The notes below the pieces were generated by a model. It was not told the DNA's origin. It did no database searches and saw only the letters and a program-made list of their open reading frames with translations. From Schmidtea nova (lineage: Eukaryota): 64,000 nt of DNA. The DNA is taken from assembly GCA_044892505.1 (NCBI GenBank), contig CM097883.1, positions 8,122,001-8,186,000 on the forward strand. The letters are read 5' to 3'. Below are positions 9,958-48,445 of the stretch, piece after piece (within the stretch, counting starts at the first letter, position 1; every line of letters begins with the position of its first letter). A program made the position numbers and the translations under genes.

Positions 9958-9963
9958 GCACCT

Positions 9964-12196: not shown

Positions 12197-12306
12197 CAAC
12201 AGAGCAGCCAAATCTAAACCAATCTGAAAATCTAAATTTATAAATATATATGCTAAAAATTTATTATTTAAATAAACTATTAAAATCAAAAATTTTAAAA
12301 ATTTTA

Positions 12307-17875: not shown

Positions 17876-17881
17876 GCACCT

Positions 17882-20114: not shown

Positions 20115-20224
20115 CAACAGAGCAGCCAAATCTAAACCAATCTGAAAATCTAAATTTATAAATATATATGCTAAAAATTTATTATTTAAATAAACTATTA
20201 AAATCAAAAATTTTAAAAATTTTA

Positions 20225-21167: not shown

Positions 21168-24100
21168 TTAATTTTGATCTTTAATAAAGAGATTATCATC
21201 ATCAAAGGTGGGTAGGATACCATTCTTGTGGAAGTACCATCGCTTGGCAGAGTGTGCGATGTTACTTATGGCACATTTCTTTAGAAGTCCATCCACCTGG
21301 CCTTTCTTTACACCAATCTTTTGAAGGACTTGCGAAGTTTCTGGAGGAAAAGAGCCAAGAGCACCAATAATACAAGTGTCAAGCTATACTTTAAAGTCGG
21401 GTTTAGCAGCTTGTATATCAGTTTTCAAAGAGTTATATTTTGCCAGATTCAATGAATTTACTCGATCAAAGTGGGTCAATGAATCACTAGGGCATTTCAA
21501 ATCAACCAGGAAAATTCTTTTACGAGACACGTCCGTTATAAGCAAATCAACTCGTTCTTTGGAAAGTGGAACAAGTGAGCATGCGTGATCAACTACAACA
21601 ATCAAGTTTTTATTAGATTGAAGTTGTTTCGCGATAAGTTTAAGACAAGCGTCATGCCGCTCAGAACCCAGTGTCAGATGTACCTTGCATGATTGGAGTA
21701 CATGAGAAGAGGTCTCATCATCTTCATGACACCGACGACATAGTCTTTTCTCACCTCTGTTATAAGGCTTCGCAAGAGTGGAAAGAGTGTTTGTGCGAGC
21801 TCTGTGAATGAAATTCCAGCTAAATTCGGACAATTCACTTCGATAAATTGCTTTGTTCACTATCGGTGAAAGTTTTACTGCTGAAGCGATGATGTTGGAA
21901 ATACAGCTTTTTTCCCATTTGGCCAAGTATGAATCACAGAGCATCATGTGTAGTATTTTTGATGTTGTCTGACGAGTGTCAGGAGTTACAATGCAAGTAC
22001 CACGCTCTGCAGTGGTGATGTAGAGCCATGGTTCTCGATTCGTGACTGTGAATGTAATGCTAATGTCATGAGTCTTTTCAAAGAAAGCAACCGCAATCCT
22101 AGCTCTTTGAAATCGAGTTTTCTTTCCAGAATGGGGGGAAAGAGACTCTTTACCATTGAGCCAATCAAGACTTTCTTGAAGAGTTGGATTCTTTATCCCA
22201 AGACGTGGACTAGTGACAAAAGCCAAAGAGTCAAGATTAACTTTCCTCGCAAAGTCACATTTCGACGTGATGAGTCGGAAAAAGTGTGTAATAGTCTGCG
22301 TGTGATACTCATCAAGGAGATCAACACAATTTGCTCCACCATTTTCTGTAGAGTTGTAAAAATAACTCACTTCAGAATGACTTGGCAAAAGCAGCATTTT
22401 TCTCAAGTGATTTCTCATTTGGCTGGTGATATTTACCGAGAGATTACTATTACCACAAGATTTTGAGAGAGCACTAGTTTTAATCTCTCTGGTTCTGAAA
22501 GGAAAGATCAAGCGAGAGTGGATGAAGATCTTGTAGGCTTTCAGTTTTTGCCAACCAAGCAAATCAGAATCGGCAAGTTTTTTGGTGTCAATTAAAGCTT
22601 GTTCAAGAATGTCATATGGACTCTGATCAGTTTCCTCTCCTACTGGCACACCAAGGTACTGGTAGAATTCATTAGACAAGAGCTTTTGAATTTTGACATT
22701 ATTGATGGAAATTTCGCTGTCAATGTGGATATTTGGCAGTTGTAAATAGCCACATTTTTCCGGGCGATATTCGAAGCCTATTTCGGTGGCAGTTGTAACA
22801 GCAATGTTGACGAGTTTTTGTAAGTCATCTACAGATTTAGCAACAATGGCAATGTCGTCAGCGTATGCGAGAATCTTGACAGATGATTCTCCAATAGTAA
22901 AAGCATCACAAACTGTACTGGAAACAGCTTCCAGTACAGGGTTTATTGCCAAAGCAAACAGAATCATGGAGATGGGACATCCCTGCTTGACACCCTTTTT
23001 AATCAGGATGTTAGGAGTTACGATAGGCCCACAACTATAAAAGGAGCTAGTGTCAGAGTATAACATTTGCAAGATGGAAGCAAATTCTTCACCAACTCCA
23101 ATGTACCGGAGTAAGGACCACATGTAATCATGTGGGACACTACCAAATGCATCCTTAATATCAAGCCAGGCAATAGATAGAGGACAGCGCTTACTATACT
23201 TGGAATGCTCAAGCGCAGCAGACAGAATTGAATTGTGCTCAACACAACCATCATGTTCAGAACCACCTTTCTGCCCAACATGCAAAAGATTGTTCAAGGT
23301 TATCCAGCGTGTAAGGCGAGAGGCAAGGCAGGAAGCGAATACTTTGTAAATAACAGAGAGTAAGGCAATTGGACGCCAAGACGATACGTCTGCATATTTA
23401 TTATTTTTGTTAGGCTTAGGAGTTAAAAGGGTTTTAAAGGCCTTCCAACTGTCAGGTATGGACTTTTCAGTAATGATCTTGTTGAATAAAAAGGCAAGTA
23501 TATGACCCCCAGGATCTAGACGCAACAAGTCACGATATTGCAATCCATCAATACCAGGACTAGTGTTGTCAGCCTTCCTAAGTTCATACACTACCTCCTT
23601 ACTCGAGATGCATTGCAGAGGAAGTACTCGTTCAGAACGTTTACAGAATACGAATAATTTCTCCCACTGGCCACGTATTGGAGTTTCATGAGAAAAATAT
23701 TTGACGATATTCTGGAATGTTGGTCGGGTAGGTACATCAAAGTTATTGATGACCATGTTGACCGCCGATTTCATGTCCGTGGTAAATTTTTTAATAAGTT
23801 TATTTTTGCTGATTTTAGAGGCTCTCGGTCTGGTTCCCAAGTAAGGTTTTGACAAAGGCTTACGTTTCTCAGGAAACTGTTCATTAATTGCATAAATAAT
23901 TTCATTGGTGCTAAAATTTGCCCATTTAATAACAAGTAATTCAGCATTAGTTATACGCTGTTTGATAGAGATATTTGTAGCAAAGTTATTATCAAGTTTA
24001 GCTTTACCTAGACTTTCAAATTTATCATGTTCTTTTACATGAAAGACCAAAGAACTAACTATATTTCCAATCTCACGCAGGTTTAAGTTTATGAGGGGTA

Positions 24101-25793
24101 AATCCTTTGAGTAATTGTTAATAAAAGAACATAAAAGCACTTTACTTATTAGACCTGAGCCGCGGATGTCATGAGGACATTCACAAAAATTTAAAACGCG
24201 GCCTGGTGTTTCTTTAATTTCATTTATTTTATTTCTGAGTATTCGACAGGTTGACATGTAATTGTCGTTATCAGTCAAAGATGTTGGATTGATAAGATAA
24301 CAATTATCAACACTATAGTCAAGAATAAGTAAAATTTCTCGATGTTTCGGAGGTGCAACAATAGCAAAGATGACTTGTGACTTGATGATCCACTCAAAGT
24401 TTAAAAATTCGTTTAGGTGCTGAGTGCAATCATCAAGAATCGCCAAGCACATTGTAGAATTTAGAAGCAAGAATCGATTAGGTAAATTTAAATTATTAAA
24501 AAATTTTGTGATGATTTTATCAGTGATTTTAGAATTTAGTAAATTTAAATTCTGAGAGATCTCATTCGCTTCCCTTAATTTTAATAAATTTAGGGACTCA
24601 CTGATCTTCGAAATGGATACTTCTTTATTGAAGAATAATCTTTCAAGCAACTCAATAAAGACAGATGCAAAGAGAATTGGGTCATCAGAGACGATAGGCC
24701 AAAGCTCAATGTTGTGATTAGGTTTGAAGCTAATGTCCGATGATAGAAAAAACTTATTTAGATAGTCAGTCATATTATCGCTAATACCAAGCAGACGTTC
24801 CGAAAGAAGTTTTTCTTGATTGTTGAAGATGTGGCTAGCACCGTATGCAGTAGAAAAGAGATAAAGGCACCAGTAATTCTCATTTGGGATAACACTTATA
24901 ACATGGTTAATTCCAAGAAAATGTTTGAAAGTGACATTTTCTCTAATGAATGACTCGTTTTGAGCAATCATATTTAATGTCAATTCGTGTGACAGAACCA
25001 AGATGTTTTTATGGTCCTTGAACCATTCCGCAATAAGGGAGGAGACACACGAGTTTCTTTTGAGAAGAAAAATGTGATTGTGTTTATTCACAACTGTTAC
25101 CTTTTTAGATTGTTTTTTGTCAGTAATCTTTGGTATCCCACCCCCAGATGATTTAGGTAATTCACTCATCATGGACAATTGAAATTGGTGGACATCCTTT
25201 CTAATGGACTCGATAAAGTCAACAGGAAACTTCTGCCATTCGCCACTTATCATCATAGCATACGCGCAGATGAAAGGACCACAGTCGTAGTTGTTGTCTT
25301 GAAAGACAAAGGATTTGTGTGGATGAAAGAAAACCGCAGATTTCAGATTAAACAAACGATTCAAAGCAATGTTGGTTTGAAGCGCAGTCGCTTTATTACT
25401 AAGTGAATGTCGGTTGTCAAAAATTGGATCAACAAAGTAAGAAGTCAGCGAGGACTTGCAATACACAAACAAGATCCAGTGAGATTGGTCAATGTTAAGG
25501 GGGCACAATAATATTTGCGCTGACAAAACTCTTTCCGGCATTGGAAAAATATCATCCGAAAGGTTTGCCATTAAAATCTCTATTTGGAAACATTTTACAG
25601 GCGCAAATTTAGGGTTACTGATGTGACTTTCTAAATAGTTATCAATGTCATCATCAGTGAACCAGACTTTAGGGTTACGTATTATGCTTTGGTTTTTGAA
25701 AATATTAACTATATTATTAGGGATAATACTATCTGTGCTGTCTGCAACAGTCTCGTTGGAGATTGGAACAGATATTGAGACTGGTGCAGGCAC
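21168..25793 (-). pseudogene. ORF2 of E3, truncated by TAG 72 codons before the normal stop
   Basis: ORF track 21384-25793 (1469 aa). The lost tail includes the conserved IGALG segment of the endonuclease region. Confidence 0.85.
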
Positions 25794-25799
25794 GCACCT

Positions 25800-27877
25800 T
25801 CATTTATTTTTTGTTGTCGTACATTTGGGTTTTTTGATCTGTCTAGGTGGCAGATCTTGAACTGTACTTTTGCAAAGTTCGACGGCAGATGACGGATCAT
25901 CATCAATATCCGTTGGTAGTTTACGCTTAGGATTCACTGTTTCTGGTGTAGAAGCAATGGGAACAGATTCATCAATAACTACAGCACTTTGGCCAGGGTT
26001 AACAGCCTCGCTGGCAGTATCAGGGTTCAGAAGTGGACTTATCGACTCAAGAAGCCTGGTAATGCACTTACCAACACCTATAGAACAGATCTTTCGGCAA
26101 GACTTTGGTACACGGAAGGAAAATTTATTTTTCAGCAAAAAGCTTTTCTTGTCCCTTACAACAAAGAACAGGAGCCTTTTTGCTTTGATGGTATCAGGAA
26201 TAATCGAGTCAGATTCAAAATCGTTAATTCCATTGGCTATTCTATCAAGAGCCTTTAATTGTTGAGCTTTTTTTGGATAGGATTTCTCAATCTCAACAAG
26301 AAAATTGTTAATTACAGAAATGGTCTCTGGAGAAATTATACTGTTTACCCTGTCAATCTCCTGGGCCAGATGAGATTGCTGAAGCTTAAGAACTCGTTCC
26401 TGGCAGCTAGTACTATAATAAGAGTCTATCGGAATTTCCCTGATCAAAGCCGGAGCCCAGGAGACCAAATCACTACAGCGTAAGGAATTAATATTCTCAA
26501 TGCACATAATGGAGTGCATCAGAAAGCAGTTGCGAAGGTAGTTAAACACATATATATCGAACGACGTTTCAGATTTATATTTTAGGGATCCCTGTAAGTT
26601 TAAAAGATTTAAATAAAAAATTATATTTATTAGTTTTTCAGGAGATTGTGGCTGATTCAACAAATGTCCAAATTCAGTGTCCAAATTTGACATTTCAGTA
26701 AAGTCCAGCAGCCCTAGGTTAAACATTATGTCAGCCGCACCTTCATCCTGCAGTCTGACAGAACTCTGGCAATTTTTGGGCAATTTTATGAATTTACCCC
26801 CCACAAATGAGATCTCTGCAGGAAAGTTTTTAGAAAATTTTAATTCATTTATTAATTTAATTAATAAATTAGGATTTTTATTTATATTTTCAACAAAATA
26901 AAGTTGAGGAATCTCAGGAAAAGATTTCGTCAGCTCTTCCAGCTCAGTACGGGAAAGTTCAGTTGGGTTTTGACTAGTGCTGACATTGGCAGAGACACCA
27001 GTATTAAAAAGATCCAGCAAGAGGAATTCTCCATCACAAAATTTCACCTGCGAATTTATCAAAAAGTTTGGGATTTCACCCTGTTGCTTGAGATCGTGTA
27101 GGATGTTGTTAATTCGGATTTCCCTATCCTTAGCATTTTTAATCACAATAGTTTCAGCAAACTTATTTGTGAGAGCAAATAAAAATTTTTTAATATAGAG
27201 GGAAGCAGGAACAAATTTGTATTCGTTACAGGTAGGCACTATAACGTTAGATCCAATTAAAAAGATGCCCTTATTTGGCTTTTTTATTGCTGGGATAGAT
27301 GGTTTTGAATCAGCTTTCGAAAGATCAACAAGCACACATATGTGGCGATTTCTATAAAACAGCCTTTCAAAACCTGATATCCCCAACGGGTTATCTGATT
27401 TTGATATTTGGCAAAGAATATTATTAATTTTATTAAATTTTTCTTTACTTTCTTTTGATTTTAATAGTTTTTCTATATTTATATTAGTTTTTAAATAATT
27501 TAATTTTTCCCTTTTAGTCAAATGGCGTGGAAAAATAGTTGAAAATACTAAGCCATCTTTTTTATTTTTACTATTGGGGTCTGATTTTTTATTTAAAGAT
27601 TTTTCAACAGGACCAGACCGAGGCTGAAAATTGTTTTCAATTATTGGATTTTGATTTAAATTGGAAATTGGATTATTATCAATTGTAATTTTAAAATTTA
27701 CTAATTTACAATCATTAAAATTTGTATCTTTATTTTCCTTATTTAAAATTATTTTTATTTTAGAAGGGTCAAACTCATCACGGCCCAAACTCTCATCAAG
27801 AATTATCTGCCTAGCAGAAAAAAAATCATTTAATTTATTTTCATTATTTATTCTATTTTTATGTTAATTTCTTCCAT
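25800..27877 (-). pseudogene. ORF1 of E3 with a 139-bp frameshifting deletion shortly after the ATG
   Basis: tctattttta|tgttaatttc at about 27861 versus E4 35631-35790. The remaining 662-codon frame is open. Confidence 0.85.
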
Positions 27878-27987
27878 CAACAGAGCAGCCAAATCTAAAC
27901 AAATCTGAAAATCTAAATTTATAAATATATATGCTAAAGATTTATAATTTAAATAAACTATTAAAATCAAAAATTTTAAAAATTTTA

Positions 27988-28225: not shown

Positions 28226-28323
28226 AGTCCACAACACCTCGTATTCCCAGGCGGTCACCCATCCAAGTACTAACGAGGCCTTAACCTGCTTAACTTCCGA
28301 GATCGAACGAGATCGGGTGAATC
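28226..28323 (-). pseudogene. 5S 3' half (nt 22-119) at the E4 3' junction
   Basis: Identical junction; retains the whole internal control region. Confidence 0.92.
28306..28322. repeat. Target-site duplication, left copy of E4 (AACGAGATCGGGTGAAT, 5S nt 23-39)
   Basis: The same 17-mer occurs at 35906-35922 and on both sides of every full-length copy. Confidence 0.85.
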
Positions 28324-28931
28324 GAAAAAGTTTTATTTAATAATAAAATTTGAAAATTTACAAGAGGACAATGCTCAACATGGAGCACGCCAAACAGGCA
28401 ATATACAAGAACAAAAGAGTCAGAAAGAAATCAATCAAATCAATGTAATTGTCGAGATATTTTCGACTCAATTGTCATTTGCAACTGCCGGAATTGTCCC
28501 AGGCATTTGATGTGGTTTTCCTTCGGATAATAGCTCCGGCTTAATTCGATATAGCTTTTGATGCATCTGCCAGGTACACGAATGAGATCAGATCGATAAC
28601 ATCAACACAAGAGAGAAGTGTCACGTGTAAGTCGGAAAACGGGCTTCTCGAGCTGTAGCGACAAGTCATCACAGTTAGAGATTAGGCAATTCCAGGCTAA
28701 CGTAATATTTACAGGCATCTTTCTGATCCCAGCTAAATCTCATCAATTCTATCTAAATATTTGCAAGAAAGGGAAATATATATATATAAACATAAATGAT
28801 AATAATTATATATAATAAATCCGGACCTTGGAGAGGGGAATATCTAAAACATAAAATATACTACTTTTATACATCAAGGTAAATGTAACAATGATAAACC
28901 TCAATTGAATAAAAAACAAAGAATATTTACA
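28324..28931 (-). other. 608-nt 3' UTR of E4 with a GC-richer, probably structured core and terminal AATAAA; no poly(A) tail
   Basis: Lies between the ORF2 TAA and the 5S junction. Short inverted repeats such as GTCGA/TCGAC and TGCC/GGCA; AATAAA at 28332-28337. Confidence 0.75.
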
Positions 28932-31900
28932 TTAATTTTGATCTTTAATAAAGAGATTATCATCATCAAAGGTGGGTAGGATACCATTCTTGTGGAAGTA
29001 CCATCGCTTGGCAGAGTGTGCGATGTTACTTATGGCACATTTCTTTAGAAGTCCATCCACCTGGCCTTTCTTTACACCAACCTTTTGAAGGACTTGCGAA
29101 GTTTCTGGAGGAAAAGAGCCAAGAGCACCAATAATACAAGTGTCAAGCTCAACTTTAAAGTCGGGTTTAGCAGCTTGTATATCAGTTTTCAAAGAGTTAT
29201 ATTTTGCCAGATTCAATGAATTTACCCGATCAAAGTGGGTCAATGAATCACTAGGGCATTTCAAATCAACCAGGAAAATTCTTTTACGAGACACGTCCGT
29301 TATAAGCAAATCAACTCGTTCTTTGGAAAGTGGAACAAGTGAGCATGCGTGATCAACTACAACAATCAAGTTTTTATTAGATTGAAGTTGTTTCGCGATA
29401 AGTTTAAGACAAGCGTCATGCCGCTCAGAACCCAGTGTCAGATGTACCTTGCATGATTGGAGTACATGAGAAGAGGTCTCATCATCTTCATGACACCGAC
29501 GACATAGTCTTTTCTCACCTCTGTTATAAGGCTTCGCAAGAGTGGAAAGAGTGTTTGTGCGAGCTCTGTGAATGAAATTCCAGCTAAATTCGGACAATTC
29601 ACTTCGATAAATTGCTTTGTTCACTATCGGTGAAAGTTTTACTGCTGAAGCGATGATGTTGGAAATACAGCTTTTTTCCCATTTGGCCAAGTATGAATCA
29701 CAGAGCATCATGTGTAGTATTTTTGATGTTGTCTGACGAGTGTCAGGAGTTACAATGCAAGTACCACGCTCTGCAGTGGTGATGTAGAGCCATGGTTCTC
29801 GATTCGTGACTGTGAATGTAATGCTAATGTCATGAGTCTTTTCAAAGAAAGCAACCGCAATCCTAGCTCTTTGAAATCGAGTTTTCTTTCCAGAATGGGG
29901 GGAAAGAGACTCTTTACCATTGAGCCAATCAAGACTTTCTTGAAGAGTTGGATTTTTTATCCCAAGACGTGGACTAGTGACAAAAGCCAAAGAGTCAAGA
30001 TTAACTTTCCTCGCAAAGTCACATTTCGACGTGATGAGTCGGAAAAAGTGTGTAATAGTCTGCGTGTGATACTCATCAAGGAGATCAACACAATTTGCTC
30101 CACCATTTTCTGTAGAGTTGTAAAAATAACTCACTTCAGAATGACTTGGCAAAAGCAGCATTTTTCTCAAGTGATTTCTCATTTGGCTGGTGATATTTAC
30201 CGAGAGATTACTATTACCACAAGATTTTGAGAGAGCACTAGTTTTAATCTCTCTGGTTCTGAAAGGAAAGATCAAGCGAGAGTGGATGAAGATCTTGTAG
30301 GCTTTCAGTTTTTGCCAACCAAGCAAATCAGAATCGGCAAGTTTTTTGGTGTCAATTAAAGCTTGTTCAAGAATGTCATATGGACTCTGATCAGTTTCCT
30401 CACCTACTGGCACACCAAGGTACTGGTAGAATTCATTAGACAAGAGCTTTTGAATTTTGACATTATTGATGGAAATTTCGCTGTCAATGTGGATATTTGG
30501 CAGTTGTAAATAGCCACATTTTTCCGGGCGATATTCGAAGCCTATTTCGGTGGCAGTTGTAACAGCAATGTTGACGAGTTTTTGTAAGTCATCTACAGAT
30601 TTAGCAACAATGGCAATGTCGTCAGCGTATGCGAGAATCTTGACAGATGATTCTCCAATAGTAAAAGCATCACAAACTGTACTGGAAACAGCTTCCAGTA
30701 CAGGGTTTATTGCCAAAGCAAACAGAATCATGGAGATGGGACATCCCTGCTTGACACCCTTTTTAATCAGGATGTTAGGAGTTACGATAGGCCCACAACT
30801 ATAAAAGGAGCTAGTGTCAGAGTATAACATTTGCAAGATGGAAGCAAATTCTTCACCAACTCCAATGTACCGGAGTAAGGACCACATGTAATCATGTGGG
30901 ACACTACCAAATGCATCCTTAATATCAAGCCAGGCGATAGATAGAGGACAGCGCTTACTATACTTGGAATGCTCAAGCGCAGCAGACAGAATTGAATTGT
31001 GCTCAACACAACCATCATGTTCAGAACCACCTTTCTGCCCAACATGCAAAAGATTGTTCAAGGTTATCCAGCGTGTAAGGCGAGAGGCAAGGCAGGAAGC
31101 GAATACTTTGTAAATAACAGAGAGTAAGGCAATTGGACGCCAAGACGATACGTCTGCATATTTATTATTTTTGTTAGGCTTAGGAGTTAAAAGGGTTTTA
31201 AAGGCCTTCCAACTGTCAGGTATGGACTTTTCAGTAATGATCTTGTTGAATAAAAAGGCAAGTATATGACCCCCAGGATCTAGACGCAACAAGTCACGAT
31301 ATTGCAATCCATCAATACCAGGACTAGTGTTGTCAGCCTTCCTTAGTTCATACACTACCTCCTTACTCGAGATGCATTGCAGAGGAAGTACTCGTTCAGA
31401 ACGTTTACAGAATACGAATAATTTCTCCCACTGGCCACGGATTGGAGTTTCATGAGAAAAATATTTGACGATATTCTGGAATGTTGGTCGGGTAGGTACA
31501 TCAAAGTTATTGATGACTATGTTGACCGCCGATTTCATGTCCGTGGTAAATTTTTTAATAAGTTTATTTTTGCTGATTTTAGAGGCTCTCGGTCTGGTTC
31601 CCAAGTAAGGTTTTGACAAAGGCTTAAGTTTCTCAGGAAACTGCTCATTAATTGCATAAATAATTTCATTGGTGCTAAAATTTGCCCATTTAATAACAAG
31701 TAATTCAGCATTAGTTATACGCTGTTTGATAGAGATATTTGTAGCAAAGTTATTATCAAGTTTAGCTTTACCTAGACTTTCAAATTTATCATGTTCTTTT
31801 ACGTGAAAGACCAAAGAACTAACTATATTTCCAATCTCACGCAGGTTTAAGTTTATGAGGGGTAAATCCTTTGAGTAATTGTTAATAAAAGAACATAAAA

Positions 31901-33557
31901 GCACTTTACTTATTAGACCTGAGCCGCGGATGTCATGAGGACATTCACAAAAATTTAAAACGCGGCCTGGTGTTTCTTTAATTTCATTTATTTTATTTCT
32001 GAGTATTCGACAGGTTGACATGTAATTGTCGTTATCAGTCAAAGATGTTGGATTGATAAGATAACAAGTATCAACACTATAGTCGAGAATAAGTAAAATT
32101 TCTCGATGTTTCGGAGGTGCAACAATAGCAAAGATGACTTGTGACTTGATGATCCACTCAAAGTTTAAAAATTCGTTTAGGTGCTGAGTGCAATCATCAA
32201 GAATCGCCAAGCACATTGTTGAATTTAGAAGCAAGAATCGATTAGGTAAATTTAAATTATTAAAAAATTTTGTGATGATTTTATCAGTGATTTTAGAATT
32301 TAGTAAATTTAAATTCTGAGAGATCTCATTCGCTTCCCTTAATTTTAATAAATTTAGGGACTCACTGATCTTCGAAATGGATACTTCTTTATTGAAGAAT
32401 AATCTTTCAAGCAACTCAATAAAGACAGATGCAAAGAGAATTGGGTCATCAGAGACGATAGGCCAAAGCTCAATGTTGTGATTAGGTTTGAAGCTAATGT
32501 CCGATGATAGAAAAAACTTATTTAGATAGTCAGTCATATTATCGCTAATACCAAGCAGACGTTCCGAAAGAAGTTTTTCTTGATTGTTGAAGATGTGGCT
32601 AGCACCGTATGCAGTAGAAAAGAGATAAAGGCACCAGTAATTCTCATTTGGGATAACACTTATAACATGGTTAATTCCAAGAAAATGTTTGAAAGTTACA
32701 TTTTCTCTAATGAATGACTCGTTTTGAGCAATCATATTTAATGTCAATTCGTGTGACAGAACCAAGATGTTTTTATGGTCCTTGAACCATTCCGCAATAA
32801 GGGAGGTGACACACGAGTTTCTTTTGAGAAGAAAAATGTGATTGTGTTTATTCACAACTGTTACCTTTTTAGATTGTTTTTTGTCAGTAATCTTTGGTAT
32901 CCCACCCCCAGATGATTTAGGTAATTCACTCATCATGGACAATTGAAATTGGTGGACATCCTTTCTAATGGACTCGATAAAGTCAACAGGAAACTTCTGC
33001 CATTCGCCACTTATCATCATAGCATACGCGCAGATGAAAGGACCACAGTCGTAGTTGTTGTCTTGAAAGACAAAGGATTTGTGTGGATGAAAGAAAACCG
33101 CAGATTTCAGATTAAACAAACGATTCAAAGCAATGTTGGTTTGAAGCGCAGTCGCTTTATTACTAAGTGAATGTCGGTTGTCAAAAATTGGATCAACAAA
33201 GTAAGAAGTCAGCGAGGACTTGCAATACACAAACAAGATCCAGTGAGATTGGTCAATGTTAAGGGGGCACAATAATATTTGCGCTGACAAAACTCTTTCC
33301 GGCATTGGAAAAATATCATCCGAAAGGTTTGCCATTAAAATCTCTATTTGGAAACATTTTACAGGCGCAAATTTAGGGTTACTGATGTGACTTTCTAAAT
33401 AGTTATCAATGTCATCATCAGTGAACCAGACTTTAGGGTTACGTATTATGCTTTGGTTTTTGAAAATATTAACTATATTATTAGGGATAATACTATCTGT
33501 GCTGTCTGCAACAGTCTCGTTGGAGATTGGAACAGATATTGAGACTGGTGCAGGCAC
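28932..33557 (-). CDS. ORF2 of E4: Ulp1/SENP-like cysteine protease + reverse transcriptase + CCHC zinc knuckle + restriction-like endonuclease (1541 codons, no ATG at the start)
   Basis: Protease: SHW (H105), VDP (D122), QDNNYDCG (Q165, C171). RT: SPGIDG, WRPIAL, LDIKDAF, GVKQGCP, YADD (30618-30629), YLG. Knuckle: CRRC-x8-H-x4-C. RLE: RHD, RVD..DLK, AKY. The first codon called is GTG. Confidence 0.95.
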   Translation of the reverse strand: MPAPVSISVPISNETVADSTDSIIPNNIVNIFKNQSIIRNPKVWFTDDDIDNYLESHISNPKFAPVKCFQIEILMANLSDDIFPMPERVLSAQILLCPLNIDQSHWILFVYCKSSLTSYFVDPIFDNRHSLSNKATALQTNIALNRLFNLKSAVFFHPHKSFVFQDNNYDCGPFICAYAMMISGEWQKFPVDFIESIRKDVHQFQLSMMSELPKSSGGGIPKITDKKQSKKVTVVNKHNHIFLLKRNSCVTSLIAEWFKDHKNILVLSHELTLNMIAQNESFIRENVTFKHFLGINHVISVIPNENYWCLYLFSTAYGASHIFNNQEKLLSERLLGISDNMTDYLNKFFLSSDISFKPNHNIELWPIVSDDPILFASVFIELLERLFFNKEVSISKISESLNLLKLREANEISQNLNLLNSKITDKIITKFFNNLNLPNRFLLLNSTMCLAILDDCTQHLNEFLNFEWIIKSQVIFAIVAPPKHREILLILDYSVDTCYLINPTSLTDNDNYMSTCRILRNKINEIKETPGRVLNFCECPHDIRGSGLISKVLLCSFINNYSKDLPLINLNLREIGNIVSSLVFHVKEHDKFESLGKAKLDNNFATNISIKQRITNAELLVIKWANFSTNEIIYAINEQFPEKLKPLSKPYLGTRPRASKISKNKLIKKFTTDMKSAVNIVINNFDVPTRPTFQNIVKYFSHETPIRGQWEKLFVFCKRSERVLPLQCISSKEVVYELRKADNTSPGIDGLQYRDLLRLDPGGHILAFLFNKIITEKSIPDSWKAFKTLLTPKPNKNNKYADVSSWRPIALLSVIYKVFASCLASRLTRWITLNNLLHVGQKGGSEHDGCVEHNSILSAALEHSKYSKRCPLSIAWLDIKDAFGSVPHDYMWSLLRYIGVGEEFASILQMLYSDTSSFYSCGPIVTPNILIKKGVKQGCPISMILFALAINPVLEAVSSTVCDAFTIGESSVKILAYADDIAIVAKSVDDLQKLVNIAVTTATEIGFEYRPEKCGYLQLPNIHIDSEISINNVKIQKLLSNEFYQYLGVPVGEETDQSPYDILEQALIDTKKLADSDLLGWQKLKAYKIFIHSRLIFPFRTREIKTSALSKSCGNSNLSVNITSQMRNHLRKMLLLPSHSEVSYFYNSTENGGANCVDLLDEYHTQTITHFFRLITSKCDFARKVNLDSLAFVTSPRLGIKNPTLQESLDWLNGKESLSPHSGKKTRFQRARIAVAFFEKTHDISITFTVTNREPWLYITTAERGTCIVTPDTRQTTSKILHMMLCDSYLAKWEKSCISNIIASAVKLSPIVNKAIYRSELSEFSWNFIHRARTNTLSTLAKPYNRGEKRLCRRCHEDDETSSHVLQSCKVHLTLGSERHDACLKLIAKQLQSNKNLIVVVDHACSLVPLSKERVDLLITDVSRKRIFLVDLKCPSDSLTHFDRVNSLNLAKYNSLKTDIQAAKPDFKVELDTCIIGALGSFPPETSQVLQKVGVKKGQVDGLLKKCAISNIAHSAKRWYFHKNGILPTFDDDNLFIKDQN

Positions 33558-33563
33558 GCACCT

Positions 33564-35795
33564 TCATTTATTTTTTGTTGTCGTACATTTGGGTTTTTTG
33601 ATCTGTCTAGGTGGCAGATCTTGAACTGTACTTTTGCAAAGTTCGACGGCAGATGACGGATCATCATCAATATCCGTTGGTAGTTTACGCTTAGGATTCA
33701 CTGTTTCTGGTGTAGAAGCAATGGGAACAGATTCATCAATAACTACAGCACTTTGGCCAGGGTTAACAGCCTCGCTGGCAGTATCAGGGTTCAGAAGTGG
33801 ACTTATCGACTCAAGAAGCCTGGTAATGCACTTACCAACACCTATAGAACAGATCTTTCGGCAAGACTTTGGTACACGGAAGGAAAATTTATTTTTCAGC
33901 AAAAAGCTTTTCTTGTCCCTTACAACAAAGAACAGGAGCCTTTTTGCTTTGATGGTATCAGGATTAATCGAGTCAGATTCAAAATCGTTAATTCCATTGG
34001 CTATTCTATCAAGAGCCTTTAATTGTTGAGCTTTTTTTGGATAGGATTTCTCAATCTCAACAAGAAGATTGTTAATTACAGAAATGGTCTCTGGAGAAAT
34101 TATACTGTTTACCCTGTCAATCTCCTGGGCCAGATGAGATTGCTGAAGCTTAAGAACTCGTTCCTGGCAGTCAGTACTATAATAAGAGTCTATCGGAATT
34201 TCCCTGATCAAAGCCCGAGCCCAGGAGACCAAATCACTACAGCGTAAGGAATTAATATTCTCAATGCACATAATGGAGTGCATCAGAAAGCAGTTGCGAA
34301 GGTAGTTAAACACATATATATCGAACGACGTTTCAGATTTATATTTTAGGGATCCCTGTAAGTTTAAAAGATTTAAATAAAAAATTATATTTATTAGTTT
34401 TTCAGGAGATTGTGGCTGATTCAACAAATGTCCAAATTCAGTGTCCGAATTTGACATTTCAGTAAAGTCCAGCAGCCCTAGGTTAAACATTATGTCAGCC
34501 GCACCTTCATCCTGCAGTCTGACAGAGCTCTGGCAATTTTTGGGCAATTTTATGAATTTACCCCCCACAAATGAGATCTCTGCAGGAAAGTTTTTAGAAA
34601 ATTTTAATTCATTTATTAATTTAATTAATAAATTAGGATTTTTATTTATATTTTCAACAAAATAAAGTTGAGGAATCTCAGGAAAAGATTTCGTCAGCTC
34701 TTCCAGCTCAGTACGGGAAAGTTCAGTTGGGTTTTGACTAGTACTGACATTGGCAGAGACACCAGTATTAAAAAGATCCAGCAAGAGGAACTCTCCATCA
34801 CAAAATTTCACCTGCGAATTTATCAAAAAGTTTGGGATTTCACCCTGTTGCTTGAGATCGTGCAGGATGTTGTTAATTCGGATTTCCCTATCCTTAGCAT
34901 TTTTAATCACAATAGTTTCAGCAAACTTATTTGTGAGAGCAAATAAAAATTTTTTAATATAGAGGGAAGCAGGAACAAATTTGTATTCGTTACAGGTAGG
35001 CACTATAACGTTAGATCCAATTAAAAAGATGCCCTTATTTGGCTTTTTTATTGCTGGGATAGATGGTTTTGAATCAGCTTTCGAAAGATCAACAAGCACA
35101 CATATGTGGCGATTTCTATAAAATAGCCTTTCAAAACCTGATATCCCCAACGGATTATCTGATTTTGATATTTGGCAAAGAATATTATTAATTTTATTAA
35201 ATTTATCTTTACTTTCTTTTGATTTTAATAGTTTTTCTATATTTATATTAGTTTTTAAATAATTTAATTTTTCCCTTTTAGTCAAATGGCGTGGAAAAAT
35301 AGTTGAAAATACTGAGCCATCTTTTTTATTTTTACTATTGGGGTCTGATTTTTTATTTAAAGATTTTTTATTTAAAGATTTTTCAACAGGACCAGACCGA
35401 GGCTGAAAATTCTTTTCAATTATTGGATTTTGATTTAAATTGGAAATTGGATTATTATCAATTGTAATTTTAAAATTTACTAATTTACAATCATTAAAAT
35501 TTGTATCTTTATTTTCCTTATTTAAAATTATTTTTATTTTAGAAGGGTCAAACTCATCACGGCCCAAACTCTCATCAAGAATAATCTGCCTAGCAGAAAA
35601 AAAATCATTTAATTTATTTTCATTATTTAATCTATTTTTACTAGAAATATTTTTAATCAAAAGAGGCATATCATTAATACATTTACTAGCATTTGAATAT
35701 TTCAAACTACTTTCAGATTTAATATTTACAAAATATTCATCTGAAATATTCAAATGCTCCAAAAGAAAATTTAACTTACTGTTAATTTCTTCCAT
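33564..35795 (-). CDS. ORF1 of E4: 743-aa protein of unknown function (ATG at 35795, MEEINSK...)
   Basis: Open in E4, E6 and E7. Indels between subfamilies in its variable region keep the frame. Basic C-terminal motifs PKRK and KKPK. The ORF track extends it to a TTG at 35888. Confidence 0.85.
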   Translation of the reverse strand: MEEINSKLNFLLEHLNISDEYFVNIKSESSLKYSNASKCINDMPLLIKNISSKNRLNNENKLNDFFSARQIILDESLGRDEFDPSKIKIILNKENKDTNFNDCKLVNFKITIDNNPISNLNQNPIIEKNFQPRSGPVEKSLNKKSLNKKSDPNSKNKKDGSVFSTIFPRHLTKREKLNYLKTNINIEKLLKSKESKDKFNKINNILCQISKSDNPLGISGFERLFYRNRHICVLVDLSKADSKPSIPAIKKPNKGIFLIGSNVIVPTCNEYKFVPASLYIKKFLFALTNKFAETIVIKNAKDREIRINNILHDLKQQGEIPNFLINSQVKFCDGEFLLLDLFNTGVSANVSTSQNPTELSRTELEELTKSFPEIPQLYFVENINKNPNLLIKLINELKFSKNFPAEISFVGGKFIKLPKNCQSSVRLQDEGAADIMFNLGLLDFTEMSNSDTEFGHLLNQPQSPEKLINIIFYLNLLNLQGSLKYKSETSFDIYVFNYLRNCFLMHSIMCIENINSLRCSDLVSWARALIREIPIDSYYSTDCQERVLKLQQSHLAQEIDRVNSIISPETISVINNLLVEIEKSYPKKAQQLKALDRIANGINDFESDSINPDTIKAKRLLFFVVRDKKSFLLKNKFSFRVPKSCRKICSIGVGKCITRLLESISPLLNPDTASEAVNPGQSAVVIDESVPIASTPETVNPKRKLPTDIDDDPSSAVELCKSTVQDLPPRQIKKPKCTTTKNK
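35349..35378. repeat. 15-bp tandem duplication in ORF1 (encodes SLNKK twice), polymorphic between copies
   Basis: TTTTTTATTTAAAGA x2 in E0-E2, E4 and E6; x1 in E3 and E7. Confidence 0.9.
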
Positions 35796-35905
35796 CAACA
35801 GAGCAGCCAAATCTAAACAAATCTGAAAATCTAAATTTATAAATATATATGCTAAAGATTTATAATTTAAATAAACTATTAAAATCAAAAATTTTAAAAA
35901 TTTTA

Positions 35906-35944
35906 AACGAGATCGGGTGAATAAAGATTATTATGGTCGTGGAC
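35906..35944 (-). pseudogene. Variant 5S 5' half (nt 1-39) at the E4 5' junction; contains the right TSD copy 35906-35922
   Basis: Same three substitutions. Confidence 0.9.
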
Positions 35945-37831: not shown

Positions 37832-40480
37832 GAAAAAGTTTTATTTAATAATAAAATTTGAAAATTTACAAGAGGACAATGCTCAACATGGAGCACGCCA
37901 AACAGGCAATATACAAGAACAAAAGAGTCAGAAAGAAATCAATCAAATCAATGTAATTGTCGAGATATTTTCGACTCAATTGTCATTTGCAACTGCCGGA
38001 ATTGTCCCAGGCATTTGATGTGGTTTTCCTTCGGATAATAGCTCCGGCTTAATTCGATATAGCTTTTGATGCATCTGCCAGGTACACGAATGAGATCAGA
38101 TCGATAACATCAACACAAGAGAGAAGTGTCACGTGTAAGTCGGAAAACGGGCTTCTCGAGCTGTAGCGACAAGTCATCACAGTTAGAGATTAGGCAATTC
38201 CAGGCTAACGTAATATTTACAGGCATCTTTCTGATCCCAGCTAAATCTCATCAATTCTATCTAAATATTTGCAAGAAAGGGAAATATATATATATAAACA
38301 TAAATGATAATAATTATATATAATAAATCCGGACCTTGGAGAGGGGAATATCTAAAACATAAAATATACTACTTTTATACATCAAGGTAAATGTAACAAT
38401 GATAAACCTCAATTGAATAAAAAACAAAGAATATTTACATTAATTTTGATCTTTAATAAAGAGATTATCATCATCAAAGGTGGGTAGGATACCATTCTTG
38501 TGGAAGTACCATCGCTTGGCAGAGTGTGCGATGTTACTTATGGCACATTTCTTTAGAAGTCCATCCACCTGGCCTTTCTTTACACCAACCTTTTGAAGGA
38601 CTTGCGAAGTTTCTGGAGGAAAAGAGCCAAGAGCACCAATAATACAAGTGTCAAGCTCAACTTTAAAGTCGGGTTTAGCAGCTTGTATATCAGTTTTCAA
38701 AGAGTTATATTTTGCCAGATTCAATGAATTTACCCGATCAAAGTGGGTCAATGAATCACTAGGGCATTTCAAATCAACCAGGAAAATTCTTTTACGAGAC
38801 ACGTCCGTTATAAGCAAATCAACTCGTTCTTTGGAAAGTGGAACAAGTGAGCATGCGTGATCAACTACAACAATCAAGTTTTTATTAGATTGAAGTTGTT
38901 TCGCGATAAGTTTAAGACAAGCGTCATGCCGCTCAGAACCCAGTGTCAGATGTACCTTGCATGATTGGAGTACATGAGAAGAGGTCTCATCATCTTCATG
39001 ACACCGACGACATAGTCTTTTCTCACCTCTGTTATAAGGCTTCGCAAGAGTGGAAAGAGTGTTTGTGCGAGCTCTGTGAATGAAATTCCAGCTAAATTCG
39101 GACAATTCACTTCGATAAATTGCTTTGTTCACTATCGGTGAAAGTTTTACTGCTGAAGCGATGATGTTGGAAATACAGCTTTTTTCCCATTTGGCCAAGT
39201 ATGAATCACAGAGCATCATGTGTAGTATTTTTGATGTTGTCTGACGAGTGTCAGGAGTTACAATGCAAGTACCACGCTCTGCAGTGGTGATGTAGAGCCA
39301 TGGTTCTCGATTCGTGACTGTGAATGTAATGCTAATGTCATGAGTCTTTTCAAAGAAAGCAACCGCAATCCTAGCTCTTTGAAATCGAGTTTTCTTTCCA
39401 GAATGGGGGGAAAGAGACTCTTTACCATTGAGCCAATCAAGACTTTCTTGAAGAGTTGGATTTTTTATCCCAAGACGTGGACTAGTGACAAAAGCCAAAG
39501 AGTCAAGATTAACTTTCCTCGCAAAGTCACATTTCGACGTGATGAGTCGGAAAAAGTGTGTAATAGTCTGCGTGTGATACTCATCAAGGAGATCAACACA
39601 ATTTGCTCCACCATTTTCTGTAGAGTTGTAAAAATAACTCACTTCAGAATGACTTGGCAAAAGCAGCATTTTTCTCAAGTGATTTCTCATTTGGCTGGTG
39701 ATATTTACCGAGAGATTACTATTACCACAAGATTTTGAGAGAGCACTAGTTTTAATCTCTCTGGTTCTGAAAGGAAAGATCAAGCGAGAGTGGATGAAGA
39801 TCTTGTAGGCTTTCAGTTTTTGCCAACCAAGCAAATCAGAATCGGCAAGTTTTTTGGTGTCAATTAAAGCTTGTTCAAGAATGTCATATGGACTCTGATC
39901 AGTTTCCTCACCTACTGGCACACCAAGGTACTGGTAGAATTCATTAGACAAGAGCTTTTGAATTTTGACATTATTGATGGAAATTTCGCTGTCAATGTGG
40001 ATATTTGGCAGTTGTAAATAGCCACATTTTTCCGGGCGATATTCGAAGCCTATTTCGGTGGCAGTTGTAACAGCAATGTTGACGAGTTTTTGTAAGTCAT
40101 CTACAGATTTAGCAACAATGGCAATGTCGTCAGCGTATGCGAGAATCTTGACAGATGATTCTCCAATAGTAAAAGCATCACAAACTGTACTGGAAACAGC
40201 TTCCAGTACAGGGTTTATTGCCAAAGCAAACAGAATCATGGAGATGGGACATCCCTGCTTGACACCCTTTTTAATCAGGATGTTAGGAGTTACGATAGGC
40301 CCACAACTATAAAAGGAGCTAGTGTCAGAGTATAACATTTGCAAGATGGAAGCAAATTCTTCACCAACTCCAATGTACCGGAGTAAGGACCACATGTAAT
40401 CATGTGGGACACTACCAAATGCATCCTTAATATCAAGCCAGGCGATAGATAGAGGACAGCGCTTACTATACTTGGAATGC
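37832..40480 (-). mobile_element. E5: 5'-truncated copy (2.65 kb), subfamily B
   Basis: Normal 3' end. The sequence stops inside RT at ...cttggaatgc and joins 5S nt 86/87. Confidence 0.93.
38440..40480 (-). pseudogene. C-terminal ORF2 fragment of E5 (from about aa 863: partial RT, CCHC, RLE)
   Basis: 682-aa ORF in the track whose first codons (TTG GAT GGG) come from 5S. Confidence 0.88.
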
Positions 40481-40863: not shown

Positions 40864-41471
40864 GAAAAAGTTTTATTTAATAATAAAATTTGAAAATTTA
40901 CAAGAGGACAATGCTCAACATGGAGCACGCCAAACAGGCAATATACAAGAACAAAAGAGTCAGAAAGAAATCAATCAAATCAATGTAATTGTCGAGATAT
41001 TTTCGACTCAATTGTCATTTGCAACTGCCGGAATTGTCCCAGGCATTTGATGTGGTTTTCCTTCGGATAATAGCTCCGGCTTAATTCGATATAGCTTTTG
41101 ATGCATCTGCCAGGTACACGAATGAGATCAGATCGATAACATCAACACAAGAGAGAAGTGTCACGTGTAAGTCGGAAAACGGGCTTCTCGAGCTGTAGCG
41201 ACAAGTCATCACAGTTAGAGATTAGGCAATTCCAGGCTAACGTAATATTTACAGGCATCTTTCTGATCCCAGCTAAATCTCATCAATTCTATCTAAATAT
41301 TTGCAAGAAAGGGAAATATATATATATAAACATAAATGATAATAATTATATATAATAAATCCGGACCTTGGAGAGGGGAATATCTAAAACATAAAATATA
41401 CTACTTTTATACATCAAGGTAAATGTAACAATGATAAACCTCAATTGAATAAAAAACAAAGAATATTTACA

Positions 41472-44400
41472 TTAATTTTGATCTTTAATAAAGAGATTAT
41501 CATCATCAAAGGTGGGTAGGATACCATTCTTGTGGAAGTACCATCGCTTGGCAGAGTGTGCGATGTTACTTATGGCACATTTCTTTAGAAGTCCATCCAC
41601 CTGGCCTTTCTTTACACCAACCTTTTGAAGGACTTGCGAAGTTTCTGGAGGAAAAGAGCCAAGAGCACCAATAATACAAGTGTCAAGCTCAACTTTAAAG
41701 TCGGGTTTAGCAGCTTGTATATCAGTTTTCAAAGAGTTATATTTTGCCAGATTCAATGAATTTACCCGATCAAAGTGGGTCAATGAATCACTAGGGCATT
41801 TCAAATCAACCAGGAAAATTCTTTTACGAGACACGTCCGTTATAAGCAAATCAACTCGTTCTTTGGAAAGTGGAACAAGTGAGCATGCGTGATCAACTAC
41901 AACAATCAAGTTTTTATTAGATTGAAGTTGTTTCGCGATAAGTTTAAGACAAGCGTCATGCCGCTCAGAACCCAGTGTCAGATGTACCTTGCATGATTGG
42001 AGTACATGAGAAGAGGTCTCATCATCTTCATGACACCGACGACATAGTCTTTTCTCACCTCTGTTATAAGGCTTCGCAAGAGTGGAAAGAGTGTTTGTGC
42101 GAGCTCTGTGAATGAAATTCCAGCTAAATTCGGACAATTCACTTCGATAAATTGCTTTGTTCACTATCGGTGAAAGTTTTACTGCTGAAGCGATGATGTT
42201 GGAAATACAGCTTTTTTCCCATTTGGCCAAGTATGAATCACAGAGCATCATGTGTAGTATTTTTGATGTTGTCTGACGAGTGTCAGGAGTTACAATGCAA
42301 GTACCACGCTCTGCAGTGGTGATGTAGAGCCATGGTTCTCGATTCGTGACTGTGAATGTAATGCTAATGTCATGAGTCTTTTCAAAGAAAGCAACCGCAA
42401 TCCTAGCTCTTTGAAATCGAGTTTTCTTTCCAGAATGGGGGGAAAGAGACTCTTTACCATTGAGCCAATCAAGACTTTCTTGAAGAGTTGGATTTTTTAT
42501 CCCAAGACGTGGACTAGTGACAAAAGCCAAAGAGTCAAGATTAACTTTCCTCGCAAAGTCACATTTCGACGTGATGAGTCGGAAAAAGTGTGTAATAGTC
42601 TGCGTGTGATACTCATCAAGGAGATCAACACAATTTGCTCCACCATTTTCTGTAGAGTTGTAAAAATAACTCACTTCAGAATGACTTGGCAAAAGCAGCA
42701 TTTTTCTCAAGTGATTTCTCATTTGGCTGGTGATATTTACCGAGAGATTACTATTACCACAAGATTTTGAGAGAGCACTAGTTTTAATCTCTCTGGTTCT
42801 GAAAGGAAAGATCAAGCGAGAGTGGATGAAGATCTTGTAGGCTTTCAGTTTTTGCCAACCAAGCAAATCAGAATCGGCAAGTTTTTTGGTGTCAATTAAA
42901 GCTTGTTCAAGAATGTCATATGGACTCTGATCAGTTTCCTCACCTACTGGCACACCAAGGTACTGGTAGAATTCATTAGACAAGAGCTTTTGAATTTTGA
43001 CATTATTGATGGAAATTTCGCTGTCAATGTGGATATTTGGCAGTTGTAAATAGCCACATTTTTCCGGGCGATATTCGAAGCCTATTTCGGTGGCAGTTGT
43101 AACAGCAATGTTGACGAGTTTTTGTAAGTCATCTACAGATTTAGCAACAATGGCAATGTCGTCAGCGTATGCGAGAATCTTGACAGATGATTCTCCAATA
43201 GTAAAAGCATCACAAACTGTACTGGAAACAGCTTCCAGTACAGGGTTTATTGCCAAAGCAAACAGAATCATGGAGATGGGACATCCCTGCTTGACACCCT
43301 TTTTAATCAGGATGTTAGGAGTTACGATAGGCCCACAACTATAAAAGGAGCTAGTGTCAGAGTATAACATTTGCAAGATGGAAGCAAATTCTTCACCAAC
43401 TCCAATGTACCGGAGTAAGGACCACATGTAATCATGTGGGACACTACCAAATGCATCCTTAATATCAAGCCAGGCGATAGATAGAGGACAGCGCTTACTA
43501 TACTTGGAATGCTCAAGCGCAGCAGACAGAATTGAATTGTGCTCAACACAACCATCATGTTCAGAACCACCTTTCTGCCCAACATGCAAAAGATTGTTCA
43601 AGGTTATCCAGCGTGTAAGGCGAGAGGCAAGGCAGGAAGCGAATACTTTGTAAATAACAGAGAGTAAGGCAATTGGACGCCAAGACGATACGTCTGCATA
43701 TTTATTATTTTTGTTAGGCTTAGGAGTTAAAAGGGTTTTAAAGGCCTTCCAACTGTCAGGTATGGACTTTTCAGTAATGATCTTGTTGAATAAAAAGGCA
43801 AGTATATGACCCCCAGGATCTAGACGCAACAAGTCACGATATTGCAATCCATCAATACCAGGACTAGTGTTGTCAGCCTTCCTAAGTTCATACACTACCT
43901 CCTTACTCGAGATGCATTGCAGAGTAAGTACTCGTTCAGAACGTTTACAGAATACGAATAATTTCTCCCACTGGCCACGTATTGGAGTTTCATGAGAAAA
44001 ATATTTGACGATATTCTGGAATGTTGGTCGGGTAGGTACATCAAAGTTATTGATGACCATGTTGACCGCCGATTTCATGTCCGTGGTAAATTTTTTAATA
44101 AGTTTATTTTTGCTGATTTTAGAGGCTCTCGGTCTGGTTCCCAAGTAAGGTTTTGACAAAGGCTTAAGTTTCTCAGGAAACTGTTCATTAATTGCATAAA
44201 TAATTTCATTGGTGCTAAAATTTGCCCATTTAATAACAAGTAATTCAGCATTAGTTATACGCTGTTTGATAGAGATATTTGTAGCAAAGTTATTATCAAG
44301 TTTAGCTTTACCTAGACTTTCAAATTTATCATGTTCTTTTACATGAAAGACCAAAGAACTAACTATATTTCCAATCTCACGCAGGTTTAAGTTTATGAGG

Positions 44401-46097: not shown

Positions 46098-46103
46098 GCA
46101 CCT

Positions 46104-48335: not shown

Positions 48336-48445
48336 CAACAGAGCAGCCAAATCTAAACAAATCTGAAAATCTAAATTTATAAATATATATGCTAAAGATT
48401 TATAATTTAAATAAACTATTAAAATCAAAAATTTTAAAAATTTTA

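Follow-up and report, generated by a model that had tools for sequence, protein, structure and literature searches.

A 5S rRNA gene array of Schmidtea nova interrupted by a probable site-specific retrotransposon of the restriction-like-endonuclease group

Introduction

Site-specific retrotransposons with a restriction-like endonuclease (RLE) represent the oldest branch of the elements lacking long terminal repeats (non-LTR elements), and are now closely studied for their insertion in harmless multicopy sites. The question addressed here is raised by a stretch of 64,000 nucleotides (nt) from Schmidtea nova (NCBI GenBank assembly GCA_044892505.1, contig CM097883.1, positions 8,122,001–8,186,000 of the forward strand), referred to below as the window. 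An array of 5S rRNA genes is interrupted in it nine times by one 7,582-bp element, present as whole copies or as fragments. Does this element seek the 5S gene, or did it land there once and multiply along with the array? We consider it very probable that the copies belong to an autonomous RLE-group non-LTR retrotransposon that integrates sequence-specifically in the 5S rRNA gene.

Within the RLE elements, the NeSL clade comprises NeSL-1, R5/LIN and Utopia. Its targets include the spliced leader, U2, 28S, tRNA-Arg, tRNA-Glu and tRNA-Pro, and 5S is not among them (PMC4640811). A Ulp1-like protease has been reported in nematode NeSL elements and in Utopia-1_TSP, and the target-specific elements of the Tx1 clade encode an apurinic-type endonuclease (APE; PMC4640811). 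Two kinds of 5S-targeting elements have been described. Mutsu, a 5S-specific non-LTR element of zebrafish, interrupts the gene some 20 nt after its 5′ end and goes by L1-type names in Repbase (PMC5340908), and the Dada-5S elements of fish are DNA transposons that target 5S genes (PMC8869645). The first-pass annotation of the window named no RLE family with this target. Searches of the full-text literature, together with two recent reviews, gave none either, and only Mutsu and Dada-5S are described there as specific for 5S genes. As far as this literature reaches, the site-specific element is of a known kind and its target, 5S, is new.

Results

Copies of the element join the 5S gene at the same nucleotides

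A search with Rfam returned 27 5S rRNA matches in the window, on the minus strand throughout. The array unit is 318 bp long (a 119-nt 5S gene plus a 199-bp spacer), and the 25 readable spacers all have the same sequence. The array ends at about window position 1365, the remaining 1.3 kb being unique AT-rich DNA. The copies of the element lie on the same strand as the 5S genes and are all in the sense orientation. By exact search, each of the eight visible 3′ ends (...CTTTTTC) is followed by 5S nt 22 onward, and each of the seven 5′ ends (TAAAATT...) is preceded by 5S nt 1–39. The strings that define these 3′ and 5′ junctions are identical over 25 and 75 nt, respectively, an identity that cannot be due to chance. 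The copies are listed below.

2481–4388, minus strand: c0, old subfamily, reduced to the 5′ 1.9 kb; one large deletion took the remainder of the element together with 5S nt 22–57
4725–12306, minus strand: c1, 7,582 bp, old subfamily; ORF1 with two frameshifts, two in-frame indels and two stops; ORF2 with two stops
12643–20224, minus strand: c2, 1 nt different from c1; ORF1 with two frameshifts, two in-frame indels and one stop; ORF2 with two stops
20561–27987, minus strand: c3, 7,427 bp, young subfamily; ORF1 with one frameshifting deletion and one in-frame indel; ORF2 with one stop
28324–35905, minus strand: c4, 7,582 bp, both open reading frames (ORFs) intact
37832–40479, minus strand: c5, 2,648 bp, 5′-truncated; no difference from the corresponding 3′ part of c4 and c6
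40864–48445, minus strand: c6, 7,582 bp, both ORFs intact
51008–58574, minus strand: c7, 7,567 bp; ORF1 with one in-frame deletion, ORF2 intact
59547–64000, minus strand: c8, 3′ 4.45 kb, running past the window end; identical to c6 over that length

The first-pass annotation had based its proposal of a 5S-specific element on identical 3′ junctions and sense-only orientation, and both are confirmed by the eight 3′ ends at nt 22. It also counted seven full-length 5′ junctions following nt 39. Seven identical junctions do exist, but only six belong to full or nearly full copies, the seventh being that of c0. In c0 the 3′ 5.7 kb are absent and the element runs straight into 5S nt 58. Because target-primed reverse transcription cannot yield such a structure, c0 must be the product of a later deletion. 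The remark that no copy lies outside 5S holds within the window, which is nearly all 5S array, and extends no further.

Seventeen 5S units of the window are uninterrupted. The number of uninserted units between successive copies is irregular (0, 0, 0, 5, 0, 7 and 2). For annotation, about one third of the 5S units of this array carry interruptions. Regarding the 5S genes themselves, the last one near the array end (1465–1583) has a score slightly below that of the others, and nt 37 is changed from G to A in the gene at 2101–2219.

Anatomy of the intact copy

Copy c4, with both ORFs intact, was used to describe the element. It has neither LTRs, nor terminal inverted repeats (TIRs), nor a poly(A) tail. 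From its 5′ to its 3′ side, and including the adjoining 5S sequences, its features are as follows (UTR, untranslated region; aa, amino acids).

35906–35944, minus strand: 5S-derived leader, 5S nt 1–39 with C14A, G21T and G22T, identical upstream of all seven 5′ ends
35796–35905, minus strand: AT-rich 5′ UTR of 110 nt, from the leader to the ORF1 ATG
33564–35795, minus strand: ORF1, 743 aa, with its TGA at 33564–33566; homologous to ORF1 of the relatives
28932–33563, minus strand: ORF2, 1,543 codons to the stop, in frame directly after the UGA
33499–33557, minus strand: stem-loop, two helices with 14 bp in all, beginning 6 nt past the UGA, a putative readthrough stimulator
32943–33455, minus strand: Ulp1/SENP-like cysteine protease domain, ORF2 aa 35–205, with His-Asp-Gln-Cys
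31713–32885, minus strand: two more Ulp1-like domains, ORF2 aa 225–410 and 415–615, recognised by profile comparison and predicted fold
30411–31175, minus strand: reverse transcriptase (RT; RVT_1), ORF2 aa 795–1049, with YADD
29451–29504, minus strand: CCHC zinc knuckle (C1352, C1355, H1364 and C1369)
28983–29375, minus strand: RLE of the PD-(D/E)xK type (D1416, D1431 and K1433)
28324–28931, minus strand: 3′ UTR of 608 nt ending in ...CTTTTTC, with a hairpin at 28372–28387 and AATAAA at 28332–28337
28226–28323, minus strand: downstream half of the interrupted 5S gene (nt 22–119), in which nt 22–39 (28306–28323) repeat the end of the leader

The order of the ORF2 domains given by the first-pass annotation, protease, RT, CCHC and RLE with no APE, is upheld by several lines of evidence that agree with each other. 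Pfam recognises Peptidase_C48 at aa 89–183 and RVT_1 at aa 795–1049 (E 2e-26), and the same scan gives no match to an apurinic-type endonuclease (Exo_endo_phos), the N-terminus being occupied by the Ulp1-like domains. Among solved structures, R2 proteins are matched by the RT region, with E 6e-45 to 1e-39, and yeast Ulp1 (1euv) by the N-terminus. In the model of ORF2 aa 1190–1541 (predicted local distance difference test, pLDDT, 89.8), the top seven matches in the PDB are again R2 proteins (E 1e-12 to 9e-8), and PD-(D/E)xK nucleases come below them. Across the family of relatives described below, YADD, the CCHC knuckle and residues D1416, D1431 and K1433 are invariant (15/15 members), and the His, Asp, Gln and Cys of the protease are present in the 12 members, out of 12, that cover that region.

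With respect to the N-terminal half of ORF2, the model of aa 1–720 displays three similar alpha/beta units, and the PDB matches of this model are all Ulp1, SENP and NEDP1 proteases. Profile comparison relates the first Ulp1-like domain to the third (92% probability) and the second to the third (93%). The first domain holds the complete catalytic set. This N-terminal architecture is rare, with six proteins at E<=1e-30 and 55 at E<=1e-3 among 1.84 billion representatives. As for ORF1, no Pfam family and no conserved Cys/His motif were recognised, and a query of a 5.8-billion-protein set gave no match. Direct comparison with ORF1 of the relatives did detect homology (E 1e-70 to 1e-14); the protein evolves fast across the family. 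At the 5′ end of the element, Rfam gave no ribozyme match at E up to 10.

A probable 5S-derived leader upstream of the copies

The interval of 28306–35944 that the first-pass annotation assigned to the element consists of c4 plus upstream 5S nt 1–39 and downstream nt 22–39. That the upstream half is not wild type had been missed. Substitutions C14A, G21T and G22T occur in 7/7 upstream 5S halves, in both subfamilies of the element, and in 0/18 of the other 5S heads. The spacer located just upstream of the inserted units equals that of the uninserted units in every case (25/25 identical). As the substitutions start at nt 14 while the spacers are uniform, host-type homogeneity ends within 5S nt 1–13. 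On this basis, 5S nt 14–39 upstream of the copies behaves as part of the element, and most likely nt 1–39 with its three substitutions would travel with the element as the 5′ leader of its RNA. If the leader is indeed carried in the RNA, the junction after nt 39 would be inherited, and not remade at each insertion. In line with a leader of this kind, G21T and G22T fall exactly at the putative 21/22 nick site and would protect the upstream half from a second cut.

Copy c5 provides a different 5′ junction. Its upstream flank corresponds to wild-type 5S nt 1–87, which implies a 66-bp duplication of nt 22–87, and microhomology at the junction is of 1 nt at most. The length of this duplication is close to the 70–72 bp duplicated around a relative of the element (L003, see below), which fits the reading of nt 1–39 as a leader. 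The ORF1 ATG of that relative lies directly at its 5′ junction, and its 5′ UTR must for this reason be target-derived, which agrees with the leader as well.

These data bear upon the second nick, which the first-pass annotation had placed at about 39/40. Were the top strand cut there, the element would have generated a true 18-bp target duplication, and the three substitutions would have arisen once in the flank of a founder copy and spread by DNA-level processes. Such an explanation accounts for the identity of nt 23–39 in the upstream and downstream copies, it has a parallel in the 20-bp duplications of reptile Utopia families (PMC4640811), and DNA-level duplication does occur in this array (c0–c2, see below). 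However, both subfamilies, which are under selection, carry the same three changes, and homogenisation would have to stop exactly at nt 14 seven times; in addition, the sole wild-type upstream flank, that of c5, joins the element at nt 87/88, with a duplication near that of L003. Taking into account the element-linked substitutions within nt 14–39, a nick at 39/40 is doubtful and we regard it as the less likely reading. The reading that we prefer is that of a leader carried by the element.

The ORF1/ORF2 boundary and the 3′ end

In the copy from the window and in ten relatives (L001–L008, L089 and L090), ORF1 ends in TGA and ORF2 follows in the same frame (11/11 elements). The codon next to the TGA is CGG in 7 of the 11. 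The stem-loop that begins 6 nt downstream is 89% paired, vs 20–38% in slid controls, shows seven compensatory pairs, and was matched by none of 500 shuffles. In eight of nine elements the conserved protease domain has already begun before the first Met after the UGA, and in four this Met also comes after the catalytic His. Programmed readthrough of the UGA, giving rise to an ORF1–ORF2 fusion, is likely from this conservation; that the fusion is then cleaved by the adjacent Ulp1-like protease would be a guess. A full-text literature search found no description of UGA readthrough in non-LTR elements.

The 3′ UTR, which gave no match in Rfam, contains a hairpin (5-bp stem, 6-nt loop) located 48–64 nt before the 3′ end. 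It was recognised in five elements, is 96% paired, and three of its five pairs are compensatory. An AATAAA is found 8–13 nt before the 3′ end in 6/6 aligned ends, a position that suggests a polymerase II transcript ending at the last bases of the element. The 3′ end regions of relatives that share the hairpin or AATAAA are as follows.

L001, 6932–6995
L004, 6963–7042
L006, 7408–7472
L007, 7987–8002

Separately, three of five ends have a T5 run. Such a run resembles a polymerase III terminator and lies immediately upstream of the internal promoter that the 5S gene retains.

Relatives of the element and their targets

The RT-RLE region was used as a query and identified about 14 proteins of the same length and architecture, with 33–57% identity, all of them on metagenome contigs from Logan and ENA. 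Several of the lineages come from a single metagenome sample, ERZ27257134. A scan of JGI metagenomes with the family alignment yielded only distant relatives, with identities of 30% or less, none of them of use for reading junctions.

Where a contig reaches beyond the element, the flanks can be read. The 3′ end of L004 (43% identity), ...AAATTTTTC, abuts nt 15 of a tRNA-Val gene in sense (junction 14/15), and three intact tRNA-Val genes follow downstream of the junction (7043–8315). In L006 (43%), the 3′ end abuts the D-loop of a tRNA with anticodon GAA (tRNA-Phe; flank 7473–7531). L003 (45%) is inserted in a 201-bp satellite (71–140 and 7517–8223) and is bordered by a perfect target duplication of 70–72 bp, both copies of which have in common variants not found in the neighbouring satellite units. 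The 28-nt 3′ flank of L092 (39%; region 4128–4176) has U2 small nuclear RNA as its best Rfam match, a weak one (E 0.13), and the target of this element would probably be U2. In L001 (55%), the 10 nt that come after the 3′ end resemble a tRNA D-arm, by eye only, and in L007 (1–115) the 3′ part of a signal recognition particle (SRP) RNA gene lies about 200 nt upstream of ORF1. The sequence past the apparent 3′ end of L091 (4380–5234) is AT-rich and contains an open frame; no small-RNA gene could be recognised in it. The contigs of L002, L005, L089 and L090 stop short of the junction.

Judging from these flanks, the family as a whole inserts precisely in repeated small-RNA genes, 5S being the target of the lineage present in Schmidtea nova. 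One protein architecture has been retargeted among 5S, tRNA-Val, tRNA(GAA), a satellite and, probably, U2. Such a retargeting series is well suited to ask which part of the protein or of the RNA reads the target.

Placement within the RLE group

The features that define the RLE group are found in the element: an RT with YxDD, CCHC and then PD-(D/E)xK located C-terminal to the RT, and no APE, LTR or TIR. Traits of the NeSL type are found as well, namely a Ulp1-like protease N-terminal to the RT and a specific insertion in a multicopy small-RNA or rRNA gene. We consider membership in the NeSL clade plausible by analogy with these traits. The best matches among named proteins come from species listed as Utopia hosts, e.g. 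Pelodiscus (31% over RT-RLE, E 3e-100).

The element may instead belong to a separate RLE lineage outside the NeSL clade, equally 5S-specific, whose Ulp1-like protease derives from deeper descent or from independent gain. The two reading frames, the three Ulp1-like domains and the lack of the N-terminal zinc fingers of Utopia (PMC4640811) argue in this direction, as do the rarity of the N-terminal architecture and the weak support for NeSL monophyly (PMC4640811). Against it, nematode NeSL and Utopia-1_TSP are the only elements for which a Ulp1-like protease N-terminal to the RT has been reported (PMC4640811), the named proteins that match best belong to listed Utopia hosts, one relative probably resides in U2, and tRNA targets are known in R5/LIN. 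A position outside the clade has, in our opinion, a minor share of the probability, and placement within NeSL stays a plausible one.

Selection and spread of the copies

The copies fall into two subfamilies about 2% apart, one formed by c0, c1 and c2 and the other by c3 to c8, and both are inserted at the same nucleotide of the 5S gene. Between c1 and c4, which represent one subfamily each, ORF2 has accumulated 48 synonymous and 30 non-synonymous changes, i.e. a ratio of non-synonymous to synonymous rates (dN/dS) of 0.17 and a synonymous excess with P=2.8e-14; by codon position, the differences number 22, 9 and 47. The ratio is 0.11 between c3 and c4 (P=2e-5), and 0.20 between c4 and c6 (P=0.006). 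As ORF2 is under purifying selection, the lineages must have diverged while replicating.

Not all the copies need independent insertions. c0, c1 and c2 are adjacent, differ by 0–1 nt and have gene defects in common, and for these reasons they must have multiplied as DNA. Unequal crossover of a 7.9-kb unit made of element plus 5S is most simply invoked for them. Spacer variants linked to the inserted units, looked for as a test of unequal crossover, were not found, all 25 spacers being identical. We infer that two processes have set the number of copies in the array, fresh insertion and the unequal crossover of complete units of element plus 5S.

An explanation in which a non-specific non-LTR element landed once, by chance, in one 5S unit and was multiplied only by unequal crossover and gene conversion would agree with the three substitutions common to all seven 5′ flanks, with the nearly identical neighbours c0, c1 and c2 and their common defects, and with the strongly homogenised array that the identical spacers denote, but it is very improbable, since passive copying of DNA is not expected to leave a dN/dS of 0.17 in ORF2 between subfamilies, the host-derived flanks are uniform though the elements differ by 2%, the counts of uninserted units between copies are irregular, the insertion of the relatives into tRNA genes and other repeated ones is no less precise, and RLE elements are mostly target-specific as a group (PMC4640811). 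This was the explanation that the first-pass annotation had named as able to refute site specificity, and selection on ORF2 together with the precise relatives disfavours it.

Discussion

The view of the first-pass annotation that an RLE-type element occupies one sense-oriented site in the 5S gene is sustained by the junctions, the domains, the R2-like folds, the selection acting on ORF2 and the precision of the relatives. Several observations weigh against sequence-specific integration in 5S, or against parts of the scheme. All the evidence comes from one array of one host, and genome-wide specificity lies beyond it. The full-length copies are not independent witnesses: the leader substitutions are common to all of them and c0–c2 multiplied as DNA. 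Copies c5 to c8 differ from each other by 0–2 nt, a near-identity that could stem from recent insertion, from duplication or from assembly polishing, and c5 itself is possibly the result of a later deletion and not a 5′-truncated insertion. Between subfamilies, dN/dS of ORF1 is about 1, with no constraint visible. No second 5S-inserted lineage was encountered among the relatives found, and the closest ones (55–57%) have a tRNA-like flank or, in the case of the 57% relative, a contig without the junction. Finally, the transcription start, the readthrough, the protease cleavage and the positions of both nicks are deduced rather than observed.

The data can be accommodated in the following scheme of integration. 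The RNA of the element would begin in the leader or upstream of it. ORF2 would probably be made as an ORF1–ORF2 fusion by UGA readthrough aided by the stem-loop, and the Ulp1-like protease may cut the fusion. The hairpin of the 3′ UTR is probably the handle by which the protein holds the RNA, and AAUAAA would probably define the RNA 3′ end. The endonuclease would then open the 5S gene at 21/22 by a nick in its antisense strand, and the freed 3′ end would prime reverse transcription of the element RNA, i.e. target-primed reverse transcription as in R2. At the other side, the end of the cDNA would pair with the upstream half of the new target, the 5′ end being joined by homology. Some R2 RNAs carry upstream rRNA sequence that aids 5′ joining. 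If so, the real top-strand break may be situated further downstream; in c5, the one copy whose flank is wild type, the junction is at nt 87/88.

Taken as a whole, the element may represent a new RLE family that lives on small-RNA genes (5S, tRNAs and probably U2) and combines a target-derived leader, borne by the RNA and guiding 5′ joining, with fusion of ORF1 and ORF2 by stem-loop-driven UGA readthrough and processing by a built-in Ulp1-like protease, which is followed by two related Ulp1-like domains; in the 5S lineage, changes at the nick site would additionally spare the leader from being recut. We put forward this combined picture tentatively, as a possibility that falls short of an even chance. 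Two of its components would be of interest on their own: the conserved UGA with its stem-loop suggests readthrough in the style of Gag-Pol in a non-LTR element, and the manner in which a 5′ end gets joined is hinted at by the substitutions that accompany the element in the upstream 5S half.

Comparison with known systems

The NeSL clade, with planarian R5/LIN, nematode NeSL-1, NeSL-1_TV and Utopia among its members, offers the closest parallel. The element has in common with it the RT-CCHC-RLE order with no APE, the sense insertion in multicopy small-RNA genes, the precise 3′ junction and a Ulp1-like protease on the N-terminal side of the RT, a trait of nematode NeSL and of Utopia-1_TSP. It differs in its 5S target, in the long ORF1 that precedes an in-frame UGA, in having three Ulp1-like domains and no N-terminal zinc fingers, and in the target-derived 5′ leader with substitutions of its own. 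Utopia in particular is defined by a U2 target, one ORF and one to three N-terminal zinc fingers, and Pfam recognises no zinc-finger family in the N-terminus of the element.

The likeness to R2 resides in the fold of the RT and of the C-terminal module formed by linker, zinc knuckle and RLE (structures 9nl2, 9dou and 8gh6), in the absence of a poly(A) tail and in a structured 3′ UTR as the likely handle for the protein. R2, in contrast, has one ORF, an N-terminal zinc finger plus Myb, a 28S target and a 5′ ribozyme, whereas the element has, by Pfam, no zinc finger or Myb and a protease instead, gives no ribozyme match, and resides in a target transcribed by polymerase III.

Dada-5S uses the same gene as a multicopy "safe" target, but it is a DNA transposon with a transposase and no RT. 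The resemblance to Mutsu is more extensive: practically the same 5S site, two ORFs, and copies scattered through 5S arrays. The first-pass annotation places Mutsu in the Tx1 clade, with an APE endonuclease. The first-pass annotation kept the element apart from Mutsu, rightly so, given that it has an RLE and no APE domain by Pfam and ends in ...CTTTTTC without a run of A; a 3′ poly(A) stretch was among the search criteria of the zebrafish Mutsu study (PMC5340908). As the endonucleases are of different types, the site that both elements share would be convergent, in the same way as Keno, with an APE, and Utopia, with an RLE, converge on one U2 site (PMC4640811). With Keno and Utopia as the first such case, at U2, the 5S gene would provide a second: an RLE element and one described as APE-type that have converged on the same few nucleotides.

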